Made by a program: the position numbers and the translations under genes. This document shows, piece by piece, positions 24,183 to 30,369 of a stretch of 64,000 bases of DNA. The stretch lies in the sequence record MH595538.1; one strand, 5' to 3'. The notes beneath the pieces are model-generated. The model was not told the DNA's origin, did no database searches, and saw only the letters and a list, made by a program, of their open reading frames with translations. How positions within the stretch are numbered: the first letter of the stretch is position 1; each line of letters starts with the position of its first letter.

Positions 24183-25850
24183 ATGGACTATGTAGAAACG
24201 AGTAAAAACCTGAAGTTGAATAAGGTTCCGTTCAACATCACTTTCTTACCCAATGATAGAAGAGTAGTCGAAGGTTTACTGCCTGTAACAAACATCGCCA
24301 TTATGGATAATCGAACGAACGATTATCACTCGCAAGGTCTTTACAGCACGGCCATTTTTGGTAAGCCAGGGGAAAAGAAAAGAGACAGACAAATGTCTTA
24401 TGTTCCTCTGCGCACTAAGATCTTCCATCCTCTTTATTATAAGGAACTTATTCGCCTAAAAGGACTCTATGGTCAGATACTGATGTCAGAGTCTTATGCT
24501 AAATGGGATGAAAAAGAAAAAGACTTTGTGCCGGCCAAAGACGGAATACTTGAAGGAGAAACTGGTTTTAGTTTCTTCATGCGTCACTGGGATGAACTTG
24601 AATTCAAACAAGGGAAATCTCAAAAGCGTCAATTGCGTATAACCATGCTAGAGCATTACCGCGATGTTGCTCTTATTGACTTCTTCATGGTCATTCCTGC
24701 GGGACTGCGTGATGTAACCCTAGATGAATCCAATCGCCCTATCGAAGAAGATATCAATGGTCTTTATAAAAAGGTTATATCGGCAGCTAACGCAATCAAC
24801 CCAGATCTTGAAGAGCTGCATCCCTCGATTCTCGACTTTCCTAAGAAACAGTTACAGAAGTCTGTTAATGCTGTGGATGATTACATCCATAACATTCTAG
24901 AAGGTAAGCGCGGATTCATCTCTGGTAAGTTTGGTAGCCGTAAGGTATTTGGTACAACTCGTAACGTTCTTTCCTCAATGGAAATGGATGCTGAGTTTAT
25001 GGGCGGACCTAAACATCCTGACCTTAACACTACTATTGTAGGGATGTATCAATTCATCAAAGCAGCAGAGCCATTGGTAGTCGATTATGCAATGCCGAAA
25101 GGTTTCTTGTCTGACTTCTTTGATGGGATAGACAGTTTTGTTCCTCTTGTCAATAAAGACACGTTGCTTAAAGAAGAAGTTCAACTATCTCCGAAAGCAA
25201 GAGAAAAATGGGGAACGACTAAAGGTCTTGAAGATCTATTAAGCGGCTTTAAATACCAGGAGCTAAGACATAACCCTGTGACGATTGATGGCAAGTTCCT
25301 TAAACTTATCTATCAGGATAATGAAAGATATCGAATCATGAATTCGATCGAAGAATTACCTGACGGATGGAACAAGTCTTTAGTTCGTCCACTCACTTGG
25401 GGAGAGATGTTCTATCTTATCGCTAAAGACCAAGTCAATAAGACTCGCTGTTATTGTACTCGCTACCCAGTTACCGGCATGGGCTCTATATTCCCTAATA
25501 AGGTATATATGCGCACAACCGTTAGGTCTCTAGACCTAGTAGAGCTAGATGAAAACTGGAACGCGACTGAAAACAGGGCAATAGAATTTCCTGACACTCT
25601 GAATAAATTAGGCTGGGTAGATACCATGGCTGTCCATACAGCATACCTACCCCACCTAGGAGCTGATTTTGATGGCGATATGCTATCATTTCAATTGGTA
25701 TACTCAGACGAAGCAGTGAAAGAAGTTGATGATTACCTCAGTAAAGTAACTAGCTATATCACTCCTCAGGGTGGTTTGCTCTACGACTCTACGAGTGATG
25801 TTACTGAATGGGTATTGTCCTTTACCACCGGGAACGGATTAGAAGAATGA
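24183..25850 (+). CDS. rpoC: Virion RNA polymerase beta' subunit, N-terminal part (phiKZ gp180-like)
   Basis: Catalytic GADFDGD motif, plus VIPAGLRD and GKRGFI...GKFGSR RpoC-like motifs. Confidence 0.92.
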   Translation: MDYVETSKNLKLNKVPFNITFLPNDRRVVEGLLPVTNIAIMDNRTNDYHSQGLYSTAIFGKPGEKKRDRQMSYVPLRTKIFHPLYYKELIRLKGLYGQILMSESYAKWDEKEKDFVPAKDGILEGETGFSFFMRHWDELEFKQGKSQKRQLRITMLEHYRDVALIDFFMVIPAGLRDVTLDESNRPIEEDINGLYKKVISAANAINPDLEELHPSILDFPKKQLQKSVNAVDDYIHNILEGKRGFISGKFGSRKVFGTTRNVLSSMEMDAEFMGGPKHPDLNTTIVGMYQFIKAAEPLVVDYAMPKGFLSDFFDGIDSFVPLVNKDTLLKEEVQLSPKAREKWGTTKGLEDLLSGFKYQELRHNPVTIDGKFLKLIYQDNERYRIMNSIEELPDGWNKSLVRPLTWGEMFYLIAKDQVNKTRCYCTRYPVTGMGSIFPNKVYMRTTVRSLDLVELDENWNATENRAIEFPDTLNKLGWVDTMAVHTAYLPHLGADFDGDMLSFQLVYSDEAVKEVDDYLSKVTSYITPQGGLLYDSTSDVTEWVLSFTTGNGLEE

Positions 25851-28800
25851 TTACATACGATAATTTCCTAAGGCAGTTTGCATTAAAACCTAGCCAGGCT
25901 TTTAGCGCAGCGCCTATCGTTTCATTAACGGATATAATGCTGCCCCGAGGGGCAGTTTTGCATTACGTTACTGATACCGCAGCTAACTTCGGTATTCGAG
26001 GATCAAACCCTCTTTTAATTGGAGAGGAGGAACGTAAAATACGCATCGCCTTTATACGTGACGGATATGGTACACACGGCCGCACTAAAAACCGCGTATT
26101 CTCTGCTGATAAAGCAATCAAGGACTTCAAGCTTCGTCAACGCCGCTTTACTGTTCAGCGCGATTGGAGCAAGGCGATAAATAGTCGCGACATGGTCATC
26201 ATGGATTACTCTGCTCTTGCCATGCAGCAGACCTATGTACAGTCTATGACTCAGTTCCATGACGAATGGATGAACATGACTGAAGCGATGATGAATAAGG
26301 TTAATCAAGTTAATTCTGATCGTCCGCAATTCATCAATGTCAAACTGCCGAGCACTTGGCCGTCTAAAGCACACTTTGGTAAAGTTGAAGAAAAGTTTTC
26401 TACTGAAGAGCTTGGTCGATGGGTTCAGCCTGGTCACTTCTGGATGCGTGAAATATGGCGTGCTATTAAAGGCATGTCCGACATCTTAAAACTAGATGAA
26501 AGAATAGTACCTAATCTATCTTTTATCTTCTCTCTTAATAACCACTGCATGATCATGTCTCTCAATGACATTCTATCTAGAGCAGAAGAAAAGAATAATG
26601 TCGCAAATGAATGGCACAAAGCCATGACCCGACTATTCCAGAAAGGCACTGGTGTCGATGATTCTATTTCTGAAGAAACAACAGGAGCAGATTCAGAACT
26701 TGACGATACACCTAATGAAGCACTGCAAGAACCAGAACCGGTCACTGAGGAGAAACAGCTTGTTAAAGGTGTGCCTAATACTGCCACTGTCCGTATTGCG
26801 GAACTAGGCCAGGCAGGCAGACTTACTGCTGCAGAGCAAAACCGACTGATCACGATTGCACAGAATGCACCATTACTAGTCGCTCCTGTCTCTTCTGGAG
26901 AACCTATTAAGCTTGGTGAGTTCATCGATATCAAGCCTGAAGAGCTAAAGGTAACCGAAGAACTAAAGACCACGGTTAATGACCTTACCGTTCCTGCTCA
27001 TGCAAAACGCAGTAAGACACTTAACTTAACTAAAGAGTATATTGAAAGAGACATTATCACAAAAGACATTGCCAGTATGATCATGCATACGGCAAACGCT
27101 GGTGTTTTTGTTCAAGACTTTAAAGTCAGTCCTTTGGTCGATGCTCTTAATAAAGGACGTACGTTTGAAATCAAGAACGTGCCAATTCAAGGCAAAGGTT
27201 CTACATGGAAAATTGAACTGCCTGACATCGAACCTGATGGAAGCTTCATGGCCGACGGCGTTCGGTATACGATGGATTTCCAGCGTGTTGACATTCCTTT
27301 AAGAAAGACTTCTCCGCAACGGGCAGCTTTGACGTCTTACTACGGGAAGCTTTTTATACAAAGGGCGGGTGTTGTTAAACACGACTATAGTAAATGGATC
27401 CGACGCAAAATATCTGACGCAGCATTAGACGCAGAAGATAAGCGCATTACGAACCAGCAGTTTGGCGGTAATGAAATCCCTCGCATGGCATTGCCTCGTG
27501 AATACACTGCTTTAATGCAAGGTTTAACTCGCTTTGAATCTAACGGCTTTGTATTCTACCTGGATCATAAGAACCGTGAATCTTTCTTTGGTTCTGATGC
27601 AGTTAAGAAATATGAATCGAAAGACGAAGTCATTATTGCAATGTCTAAGTCTAAAAAGGAAGGTAAACATAAATATCTGACCTTGAATACACAGGGCTTT
27701 GTTAACGGCGATATTGTCACGCCTATTAAGCTACTAGAGTTCCTAGGTGGTGGATGGGGCACTCCTCCAAGAGATGTTGCCGAGATTCTTATCTTCGGTA
27801 AGCGTGTACCGGTTGGCTTGGTGTTGGCTTATTACACTGGCCTAAATGAACTTATCAAACTGACTAAAGCTAAGACTCGTCGCATTCCTGCTAACCAGAG
27901 AGTAAGTAAGTCTGCAATGAATGAAGATGAAATTTACATCAAGTTCAACGATGAGTGGCTAGTAGTCGATGGAACAGATCCTGTCGTTTCTTTGATCTTC
28001 TCTGGTTTTACTGCTTCTGAGAAATTAATCTCTAGTTATAATCTTTCTGACTTTAACAGCAAAGATGTCTATGGTCCTTTGTTCATGAAACTAGGGGCAG
28101 CAAGACACCATCTAACTGAACTCGAGATTCTCAAGGAACTGTACATTGATCCGATCACTCGCGATCTACTTAAAGAAATGAAGCTGCCAACGGAATTAGT
28201 CCCGTTGATGATTGAAGCCATATTCTTAATTAGAAACGATGATTGGTCAGAAGAAACCGATCCTACAATGCAGCGTCGTAGAGGCTATGAGCGAATTGCT
28301 GGTTTTGTCTATAAGAAACTTATTGAAGCAATACGTGAACAGCGCAACAAACCTAATCCATCCAACCATGCGGTTTACATGGGACCTAGAGATGTATGGG
28401 CGCAATTAGTAGCCGACCCTACGGTACAGCTCGTTAAAGATCTAAACCCAATCCACTTCCTTAAAGAACAAGAAGCAGTAAACCTTTCTGGTGATGGCGG
28501 TCGTAAAGGCGAGACGCTGGTTAAGAAATCTCGTTCCTTTAATGCTAAAGACTTAGGTAGTATTTCAGAGTCGACTCCTGACTCAGGTAAAGTTGGTATT
28601 CGTACTTACTTGACAGCTAATGCTAAGACAGCTGGTATTAGAGGCATGTGGGAAGAGTTTGATTTTGAACGTGATGGTAGTACATCGGTACTCAGCACCA
28701 CTGCGTTAACGTTGCCAGCAATGAACCACGACGACGGTTAAGAAAAAATAATTTGGTACAGTACTGCACTTTCATATAGACTTAATCATGCCGAAGGAAA

Positions 28801-30369
28801 AAGATTTCCTGACGGGATTAGGTACTATAAATACCAAACGTACCAAAGAGACGTTGGCCGTCTTAAAACCTCTTTAATTGCGGAGACTCTCTGTAGAAAG
28901 CCATGATTGAATTCTAGTGGAAACACTAGTTGTAAAATCATGACCTGGAGATATCGGACACGAAGTCCCTAGCGCAGCGAAGACCCTAAGTCTATCGATA
29001 AGGGTAACGTTCAACGACTATCGAAAGCTTAACTTGAGAAGAAATCTTTCAGGGGATCATAAGCTTACCTAAGGGTAAGTGAAGCGAGTAGAGTACGGCC
29101 CGAGTGGGTGGGTATAGAATCCCTTAAATGGAAAGAGGAGGCAGGGTTATCATGGTAACAGTGATGGCCTTGAAAAGATAGTCTCAACATCCAGGTAATT
29201 CTGGAGCTGCTCATAAAGAGCGACTATGTCTAACGAACATAGTGAAGATATTGAAACGTCAAAACTTAGCATCGGTGCAAATGTCTGCTATTGTTCCTTG
29301 TGTTGGCTATCGAACCATGGCATTACGCACTGGATATGAATCCGTCATTGCTGCACGTCTAAATGAAATGTATGCAATCAATGCTGAGAAAGAAGGCGAG
29401 ATCATTAAGCTTACGGATAAGATCCTTAAGGTTAAATATAAAGATGGGGAAACTAAAGGCTGGCGTATTGGACGTATCCATGGCAAAGCTGACGGTGAAA
29501 CTATTCCTCATGATATCGTCACTGACTTAGCGAAAGGATATCAGTTTGGTCCAGGTGAAGTATTAGCATGGAACGTTGCTTGGTTCGAACGTGATTTATT
29601 CAGTAAGACTAATGTGTCAATGAAGACAGGTGCGGTTGCACGTACTGTACTGTTAGAAAATAATGATACATTAGAAGATGGTTCACGTATCGGCCCAAGG
29701 CTTAAAGAAAAACTCACTACTAGAATTACAAAACAAAAAGCGATTCATCTAGAAGTTGATCAGATCATTGAAGATCTTGTTAACATAGGCGATGAGCTTG
29801 TTTACGATTCTGTTGTCTGTAAGATAAGAAACCCTGTTTCATCTAACCTGGAAGAAACCGATGCGTCGTTATTAGCTCTGGCTAAACTGTCTGACCAGAA
29901 CCCTAAATCCAAGTTTGCTGGAACTGTTACTTCTATTGAAGTTTATTACAATGCTGAATTAGAAGATATGTCTGATTCCATCAAGGCGATTGCTGAAGCC
30001 GATAACGCTAGACGCAAAGCACTTAAACGTGACTTGGGCGGCAAGGTTGCAGAGACTGGTCAGATTAAGCGCGCAAGTTTCGTAGGCGGGGATAAACTTG
30101 TCCCAGGTAAAATTGCGATCTTGATTAACATTGATGCTCCTTTAGCACAAGGCATCGGAGATAAAGCAGTATTCGGCAACCAGCTTAAAACCATTCACGG
30201 TGGTGAGCTAATTGGCGAGAATTACTCTGAAGATGGTCAGATCATTGATGCATTCTTTGGGTACCGTTCTGTCAACGACCGTATTGTAAACTCTCCTGTC
30301 TTCCAAGGAACCATTAACTCTACAATGAGTCAGGTCACCAAGAATTTCTTTGAAATACTCGGTGATTAA
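25847..30369 (+). CDS. rpoB: Virion RNA polymerase beta subunit (phiKZ gp178-like), two exons 25847-28738 and 29254-30369, about 1335 aa spliced
   Basis: ESTPDSGKVG motif in exon 1. The spliced junction MNHDDG/KRQNLASVQMSAIVP matches RpoB [33 protein letters not shown] at the end of exon 2. Confidence 0.9.
28739..29253 (+). ncRNA. Group I self-splicing intron (IA-like), 515 nt, no full-length homing endonuclease ORF
   Basis: Exon 1 ends in U and the intron ends in G. IGS GCCGTC (28857-62) pairs with exon 1 GACGGT (P1) and GACGTT (28850-55) pairs with exon 2 AACGTC (P10). P3 CCTCTTT/AAAGAGG; P7 GACTATC/GATAGTC; P element AATTGCGGAGAC, R element GTTCAACGACTA. Confidence 0.93.

Follow-up and report, generated by a model that had tools for sequence, protein, structure and literature searches.

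The stretch of DNA analysed here, which we refer to as the window, comprises bases 1-64000 of record MH595538.1 (288,967 bp; identical coordinates), the genome of Vibrio phage BONAISHI, a phiKZ-like jumbo phage whose host is Vibrio coralliilyticus. Comparative analysis leads us to conclude that the 515 nt at positions 28739-29253 of the window very probably constitute a group I intron, putatively of the phage IA type, and that this intron interrupts what is one gene, encoding the beta-like subunit of the virion RNA polymerase (vRNAP). A family of introns at the same site is already known from phage PhiPA3 (PMC11620839); particular to BONAISHI are that the endonuclease is gone and that the insertion is shifted by one codon.

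Exon junction and continuity of the beta subunit gene

The open reading frame (ORF) of exon 1 ends in CAC GAC GAC GGT TAA, its last residues NHDDG closing at position 28738, and the frame picks up again at 29254 with AAA CGT CAA AAC (KRQN). A first-pass annotation, made from the sequence alone, had described this same arrangement, with a TAA stop right after NHDDG and KRQN 515 nt later, and it was correct to the base. In most of the related introns described below a stop codon is likewise present at the start of the intron or soon after it. GenBank lists the two parts as separate coding sequences (CDSs), ORF25 (25847..28741) and ORF26 (29242..30369), each named 'RNA polymerase beta subunit'. 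The start of exon 1 is placed at 25847 in ORF25 and at 25808 in the longest ORF, and the GTG start of ORF26 lies within the intron. The genome paper assigns ORFs 24, 25, 26 and 92 to a phiKZ-type virion RNA polymerase (RNAP), and the word intron is absent from it (PMC6207643). That automatic annotation would call two subunits, as the first-pass annotation had anticipated, is therefore what is found in the public record.

The position of the junction was delineated by tblastn with two separate queries, the C-terminal 200 residues of exon 1 and the N-terminal 200 residues of exon 2, which gave matches in ~300 jumbo phages. The two matches abut, with zero bases between them, in pir03 (40873|40874), sm033 (150280|150281) and Yong XC31, and they are one unaligned codon apart in Pseudomonas phiKZ-like phages and in Xoo-sp14. 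In five such relatives a single CDS runs across the site, reading HDD-(A/G/P)-KR, and the sequence of Yong XC31 at this point, GAC GGT AAA CGT, is identical to the exon junction predicted for BONAISHI. In agreement with these results, exon 1 corresponds to positions 376-1050 (E 4e-222) and exon 2 to positions 1052-1420 (E 1e-116) of the 1424 positions of PHROG 3148 (RNAP beta). As the profile continues from 1050 to 1052 across the gap, the two ORFs represent successive segments of one protein family, and no part is missing between them.

A profile built from the intronless homologues aligns the site to the RpoB motif HDDANR of both Thermus (1iw7_C, E 1.1e-14) and E. coli (E 0.005), which bears out the earlier claim that an RpoB HDDxxR motif extends across the junction; a search of PDB with the end of exon 1 as a single sequence gave no match. 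Gene callers place the start of exon 2 in the relatives anywhere between 14 codons upstream and 31 codons downstream of the conserved Lys, and inspection of the BONAISHI sequence revealed no Shine-Dalgarno-like purine run upstream of the GTG at 29242. Judged from these sequences, exon 2 appears to be without an independent start. The first-pass annotation had also assigned the gene to the virion RNAP. The beta gene does appear to be the orthologue of phiKZ gp178 and of PhiPA3 gp211/gp209, and this part of the assignment stands; the label 'virion', and with it the presumed packaging of the product, comes from that orthology. ORF24 (window 24183-25850) is a 'hypothetical protein' in GenBank but RNAP beta-prime in the genome paper (PMC6207643), and a Pfam search of its protein gave no match.

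Splice sites, guide sequence and ribozyme core

The base preceding the insert is a U (28738) and the last base of the insert is a G (29253). The exon 1 strand of P1, GACGGU, pairs with GCCGUC at 28857-28862 over 6 bp, one of which is the splice-site U-G wobble, and a P10 helix of 6 bp can be drawn between AACGUC at 29255-29260 and GACGUU at 28850-28855. All ten Vibrio-type introns have a perfect 6-bp P1 complement immediately upstream of P3, and position -2 of P1 covaries among them from A-U to G-C. A G occupies the 3' end in 14 out of 14 related introns when the junction is drawn so that the reading frame is preserved. Thus, the P1, P10, P3 and P7 pairings listed by the first-pass annotation could all be located, and its claim that the splice sites are fixed exactly is upheld by P1 and P10 together with the abutting exon matches in pir03, sm033 and Yong XC31.

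A further complementarity was noticed between GUCUUUA, made up of the 3' half of the guide and the bases next to it, and the 3'-terminal UGAAGAY (in the window, 28860-28865 with 29243-29249). It is present in six of eight Vibrio-type introns and the pairing would compete with P1. No compensatory changes were observed for it in these eight introns, among which it is conserved only.

The ribozyme core is recognised by the Rfam model RF00028, which matches positions 28798-29206 over its full length (model 1-253) with 37.9 bits and an E value of 5.5e-8 for an 801-nt stretch (4.7e-9 for the whole phage record). The Infernal check suggested by the first-pass annotation hence yields a full-length match, although one whose score falls below the gathering score of 50 bits. 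A homologous, ORF-less intron at the same site in another phage sequence (L017) scores 68 bits, which is above the curated threshold. The intron family therefore passes the model, and the sub-threshold score of its BONAISHI member is largely attributable to long insertions.

Helices were placed by hand and by local folding, and their covariation was analysed in a set of eight homologous Vibrio-type introns with a mean column identity of 62%. RNAalifold predicted 56 pairs for this set, 20 of which remain paired through changes on both sides. These doubly changed pairs include pairs in P3 (CG to UA at two positions), P5a, P6 and P6a, and manual pair counts revealed covariation in P5 and in an extra hairpin between the 3' strands of P5 and P4 as well; the stem of this hairpin occurs as GGAC/GUCC, GGGC/GCCC, GUGUC/GACAC and CCUGA/UCAGG. 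No variation is seen in P4 or P7, the P7 strands being GACUA/UAGUC throughout, and for this reason P7 is backed by conservation and not by covariation. Also invariant across the aligned introns are the R element GUUCAACGACUA and the S element AAGAUAGUCUC. The 113-nt insert between P7 and the 3' strand of P3 contains predicted hairpins and aligns poorly among the relatives, one hairpin at about 29065-29080 being common only to BONAISHI and intron L015. A P7.1/P7.2-type domain at this junction is a mark of subgroup IA, and the BONAISHI insert may be such a domain. The P9.2 loop, UAACGAA (within 29224-29242 of the window), is conserved from Vibrio-type to PhiPA3-type introns. Because the loop is conserved while its stem covaries, we suggest that it may make a tertiary contact. 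The positions of all these elements are given in Table 1.

Table 1. Predicted features of the interrupted vRNAP beta gene of BONAISHI (positions in the window; P, paired region)
Feature	Position	Strand	Basis and remarks
Exon 1, vRNAP beta gene	25808..28738	+	ORF list, translation, PHROG 3148, GenBank; C-terminal end ...AMNHDDG
P1 exon strand, GACGGU	28733..28738	+	Sequence; U28738, at the 5' splice site, pairs with G28857
In-frame TAA	28739..28741	+	Intron bases 1-3; would end translation of unspliced RNA
Long P1 loop (L1), 5' splice site to guide	28739..28849	+	Comparison of 14 introns; predicted local folding
Putative remnant, last ~35 codons of I-HmuI-like HNH endonuclease (PhiPA3 gp210 type)	28760..28864	+	tblastn, profile hidden Markov model
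Internal guide sequence	28850..28862	+	Sequence and folds; GACGUU 28850-28855 (P10), GCCGUC 28857-28862 (P1)
Catalytic core	28869..29183	+	RF00028 alignment, RNAalifold, pair counts, local folds
P3 (7 bp)	28869-28875/29135-29141	+	RF00028 alignment, covariation
P4	28879-82/28973-76	+	RF00028 alignment, folds
P5	28888-93/28946-51	+	Folds, pair counts; long P5a/P5b extension 28902-28943
Extra hairpin between P5 and P4 3' strands	28956-28968	+	Alignment, pair counts
P6/P6a	28977-29010	+	RF00028 alignment, RNAalifold
P7	29016-29021 GACUAU / 29178-29183 AUAGUC	+	Sequence, RF00028 alignment
P7-to-P3' insert, 113 nt	29022..29134	+	RF00028 alignment insertion, intron alignment, fold
P8	29142-29172	+	RF00028 alignment, folds
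P9, P9.1, P9.2	29190..29243	+	Folds; P9 29190-95/29200-05, P9.1 ~29208-29222, P9.2 29224-28/29238-42
Terminal G (omega-G)	29253..29253	+	Sequence; 3' splice site 29253|29254
Exon 2	29254..30369	+	Translation, PHROG 3148, GenBank; opens KRQNLASVQM...

These features suggest how the intron would be removed. The guide would pair with the last six bases of exon 1 (P1, with U28738-G28857 at the splice site) and, to form P10, with exon 2 bases 2-7. The P3-P9 core would then bind guanosine, cleave after U28738 and ligate U28738 to A29254, beyond G29253, to give one mRNA that encodes ...NHDDG-KRQN... and in which the RpoB active-centre motif HDD-x-(K/N)R is restored. In unspliced RNA, translation would stop at the TAA with which the intron begins, and production of the vRNAP may consequently depend on self-splicing.

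The sub-threshold Rfam score, and nothing else, speaks for a chance match of RF00028 in what would be an ordinary intergenic spacer of 515 nt. We regard this explanation as effectively refuted, as the match has an E value of 5e-8 over the full model, the helices covary, homologous introns are present at the site in 13 phage sequences besides BONAISHI, one of them above threshold, and intronless alleles abut exactly at the site. An intein or a frameshift was ruled out as well, given the immediate stop, the absence of a protein-splicing domain from the insert and the presence of a ribozyme.

Intron family, endonuclease loss and insertion registers

The intron of PhiPA3 has been described before: gp211/gp210/gp209 represent a mobile group I intron in the vRNAP beta gene, and its HNH nicking endonuclease cuts the phiKZ gp178 gene, which gives PhiPA3 a competitive advantage (Birkholz et al., Science 2024; PMC11620839). 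The BONAISHI intron thus occupies the site at which the PhiPA3 intron endonuclease acts as a weapon between co-infecting phages. Both introns reside in an orthologue of phiKZ gp178 and interrupt the HDD motif, and their ribozyme cores are homologous, as judged from a blastn match and from their placement in one intron tree. They differ in that PhiPA3 encodes an intact HNH nicking endonuclease of 330 aa, whereas BONAISHI retains a ~35-codon remnant, and in that the PhiPA3 intron is inserted after the second Asp codon (DD|MKR) and that of BONAISHI one codon further on (DDG|KR). A canonical 6-bp P1 with guide and with a U-G wobble at the insertion site as published was looked for in the Pseudomonas-type introns of PhiPA3 (L010), L017, L018 and L020, and none was found. 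These four introns have a conserved hairpin followed by AUGGU ahead of P3.

When the BONAISHI intron was used as a blastn query, matches were obtained in C-ZP2022, in Yong phages and in PhiPA3. Core identities within the family are 54-74%. The closest intron of an isolated phage is that of C-ZP2022 (CZP2022_246 to CZP2022_244), which is 73.8% identical over 190 nt and ~66% identical in the core, scores 40.2 bits with RF00028 and shares the P3-P9 layout and the 3' end GAAGAUAUUG. Unlike the BONAISHI intron it is 1439 nt long, encodes a 325-aa 'putative endonuclease' (CZP2022_245), is inserted at the usual site (GAC GAU|...|GCG AAG) and has the guide GUCGUC instead of GCCGUC; this intron is unannotated.

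A related-locus search for relatives of exon 2 in viral contigs gave none, and a word search with exon 2 gave 36 further clusters of stand-alone ORFs of the size of exon 2. Twelve contigs were taken from these clusters, 11 of which extend upstream of exon 2, and all 11 contain an insert of 336-1454 nt at the same site. Three of these inserts encode an HNH/NUMOD endonuclease of 325-337 aa and eight contain no ORF; the introns of L015, L016 and L020 score 35-38 bits with RF00028. At its deep nodes the intron tree mirrors the exon tree. Exact-match scans of viral and metagenome contigs with a class-B guide 17-mer gave 10 matches, all of them due to chance and none preceding a P4 motif.

Like the introns at the HDD site, the classical phage IA introns (T4 td and nrdB, SPO1 DNA polymerase, Twort) lie in the gene for an essential nucleic-acid enzyme and break one of its conserved catalytic motifs, have an early in-frame stop, and occur in versions with and without an ORF; their P7.1/P7.2-type insert may have its counterpart in the 113 nt of BONAISHI. 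The family of BONAISHI differs from them in its host gene and in the place of its endonuclease ORF, which is the P1 loop, with an overlap into the guide. In total, at least 14 phage lineages have an intron at the HDD site, with or without an endonuclease and in two registers. They therefore provide a natural system for the study of gain, decay and possible protection by mobile introns in nucleus-forming phages.

In the intact members of the family the P1 loop contains the endonuclease ORF, the final codons of which (...GRL, stop) extend into the guide sequence. The five intact intron endonucleases are 36-87% identical to each other and 36-39%, or up to 44%, identical to PhiPA3 gp210. Frame +1 of the BONAISHI intron contains, at intron bases 22-126, the sequence STALSYRLNHAEGKRFPDGIRYYKYQTYQRDVGRL (STALSYRLNH...DVGRL), which ends inside the guide sequence as do the intact genes. 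It was detected by tblastn with the five intact endonucleases (best E 5e-4) and by comparing a hidden Markov model of the endonuclease C-termini with the six frames of the intron (E 3e-7), in which case the match reaches the last position of the profile. Pfam gave no match for this piece, which is very short. These results indicate that the endonuclease disappeared through a deletion of roughly 0.9 kb. On its + strand the intron contains no ORF that reaches 40 aa, and neither a nuclease domain in the neighbouring genes nor a candidate maturase in or beside the intron was found. Hence, the earlier statement that no homing endonuclease gene is visible in the intron or next to it holds for a gene, but not for the C-terminal remnant of ~35 codons that survives. 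By sequence, the BONAISHI intron is most likely a derived, immobile member of the PhiPA3 gp210-type family. It would descend from mobile introns that carried an I-HmuI-like HNH nicking endonuclease of the gp210 type in the P1 loop, from which BONAISHI would have deleted the ~0.9 kb while keeping the last ~35 codons. In BONAISHI 118 nt separate the P1 guide strand from the 5' splice site, versus 7-23 nt in relatives without an ORF and ~1040-1070 nt in relatives with an endonuclease gene in the P1 loop.

Eleven introns, including those of PhiPA3 and C-ZP2022, share the usual register, in which the insertion point is directly behind the second Asp codon (GAY GAU|) and a single codon (G, A, P, M or L) separates the intron from KR. 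In BONAISHI, L015 and L036 the intron follows GAC GGU| and the 3' exon opens directly with KR. The exon/guide pair is GACGAU/GUCGUC in seven of the ten Vibrio-type introns, all in the usual register, and GACGGU/GCCGUC in the remaining three, which are BONAISHI, L015 and L036; the exon change from A to G thus has its counterpart in a U-to-C change of the guide. The metagenomic introns L015 (SRR22372223) and L036 (a contig of GCA_024449665.1) have the same GAC GGU|...G|AAA site and guide GCCGUC as BONAISHI and likewise no ORF. They differ from it by short P1 loops (7 and 23 nt before the guide), by having no endonuclease remnant and by a P10 that is not evident.

The three shifted introns form one clade (support 99/97) that is nested among the usual-site introns, which indicates that the one-codon shift arose once and is derived. 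In this sub-lineage the intron would have become inserted one codon (3 nt) downstream, with the guide changing from U to C to match. In the exon-2 tree the host genes of the three introns fail to group as one clade, and lateral spread of the shifted intron is suggested by these trees, a suggestion that we do not put forward as a claim; approximately unbiased (AU) tests of the intron-exon discordance were only marginal (p = 0.04, 0.25, 0.036 and 0.0375). The shift may have occurred by reverse splicing into the neighbouring register, the ancestral guide GUCGUC being able to pair with GACGGU through a U-G wobble, or alternatively by misaligned repair.

A more far-reaching reading, which we advance tentatively and consider rather doubtful as a whole, is that the intron of BONAISHI, L015 and L036 moved one codon downstream of the ancestral homing site, possibly by such wobble-mediated reverse splicing, and spread among divergent Vibrio jumbo phages, and that in BONAISHI it confers immunity rather than being a parasite. 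GUCGUC would then have been fixed later as GCCGUC, a change that leaves the residue encoded by the overlapping endonuclease codon as it was (GGU to GGC). An intron without endonuclease might persist because it splits the target of the gp210-like 'weapon' endonucleases of co-infecting relatives.

Probable splicing of the BONAISHI intron and its alternatives

Some observations do not favour an intron that is spliced in BONAISHI. A default Rfam scan at the gathering score of 50 bits lists nothing, because the match reaches 37.9 bits and appears only under an E-value threshold. P10 is strong in BONAISHI and not conserved among its relatives, the extra hairpin at 28956-28968 occupies the place of what is normally a short J5/4 junction in group I introns, and the distance of 118 nt between the 5' splice site and the guide is unusually long and could slow the formation of P1. 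No BONAISHI sequencing run is listed, the genome paper contains no virion proteomics (PMC6207643), and splicing of the PhiPA3 intron has been termed 'putative' (PMC11620839).

The only serious rival is that the intron is dead. In that case there would be no splicing, and beta would be made as two polypeptides that assemble in trans, the second one starting from the GTG at 29242. The two CDSs in GenBank, the degraded endonuclease and the sub-threshold Rfam score would fit with this. RNAP subunits of jumbo phages are moreover naturally split, and intron loss has been proposed as a source of such splits (PMC7598289). Natural splits resemble the BONAISHI locus in that two adjacent CDSs are annotated as 'beta subunit', but they occur at domain borders and the parts have their own starts (PMC7598289), whereas the break in BONAISHI lies inside the most conserved motif of the active centre and is bridged by a ribozyme. 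In addition, no damage is seen in the core, the guide or either splice-site base, covariation links the guide to the exon, the GTG is not preceded by a Shine-Dalgarno-like run, the first usable start codon falls at different places in the relatives, and orthologues that are free of an insert always consist of one CDS. We therefore consider a dead intron unlikely, and splicing of the BONAISHI intron in vivo the probable situation.

A spliced intron might still require a protein cofactor, either an RNA chaperone of host or phage or a maturase, if the long P1 loop and the peripheral inserts hinder folding. Many group I introns need proteins to fold efficiently, and the 118 nt that lie between the 5' splice site and the P1 guide strand and the 113 nt from P7 to P3' would be in line with such a need. 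However, there is no candidate maturase in or beside the intron, and the phage IA introns of T4 td and Twort self-splice in vitro, for which reasons we find dependence on a cofactor highly improbable.

The gene model of BONAISHI should become one interrupted CDS, join(25847..28738, 29254..30369), and the split beta genes of C-ZP2022 and of many metagenomic jumbo phages need the same re-annotation. BONAISHI is a candidate for phage therapy against a coral pathogen, and correct gene models matter for this reason.

Further introns were observed upstream in the vRNAP beta genes of metagenomic phages (L016, 2297-2725; L017, 207-549; L015, 1032-2543). RF00028 scores of 50.3 and 64.8 bits were obtained among them, and some carry endonucleases of the DUF723 type; the vRNAP beta gene can therefore be in three pieces. 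The pir03 phage has an endonuclease-carrying insert at another site of the beta gene.

Two more likely group I introns are present in BONAISHI outside the window, at 230447-230843 and 233063-234230 (loci L006, L008 and L038). An ORF-less one splits the ribonucleotide reductase alpha gene (ORF232/233; RF00028 32.2 bits at 230419-230817), and the intron in the ribonucleotide reductase beta gene (ORF234/236) contains the HNH endonuclease ORF235 and gives a partial RF00028 match of 16.4 bits. Both genes are annotated as two separate subunits each. The genome of C-ZP2022 (L002, OM319461.1) contains four RF00028 matches, among them 236444-236838, 189844-190223 and 264776-264940, none of which is annotated, and a second intron with an endonuclease (CZP2022_247) is located between CZP2022_248 and the beta gene.

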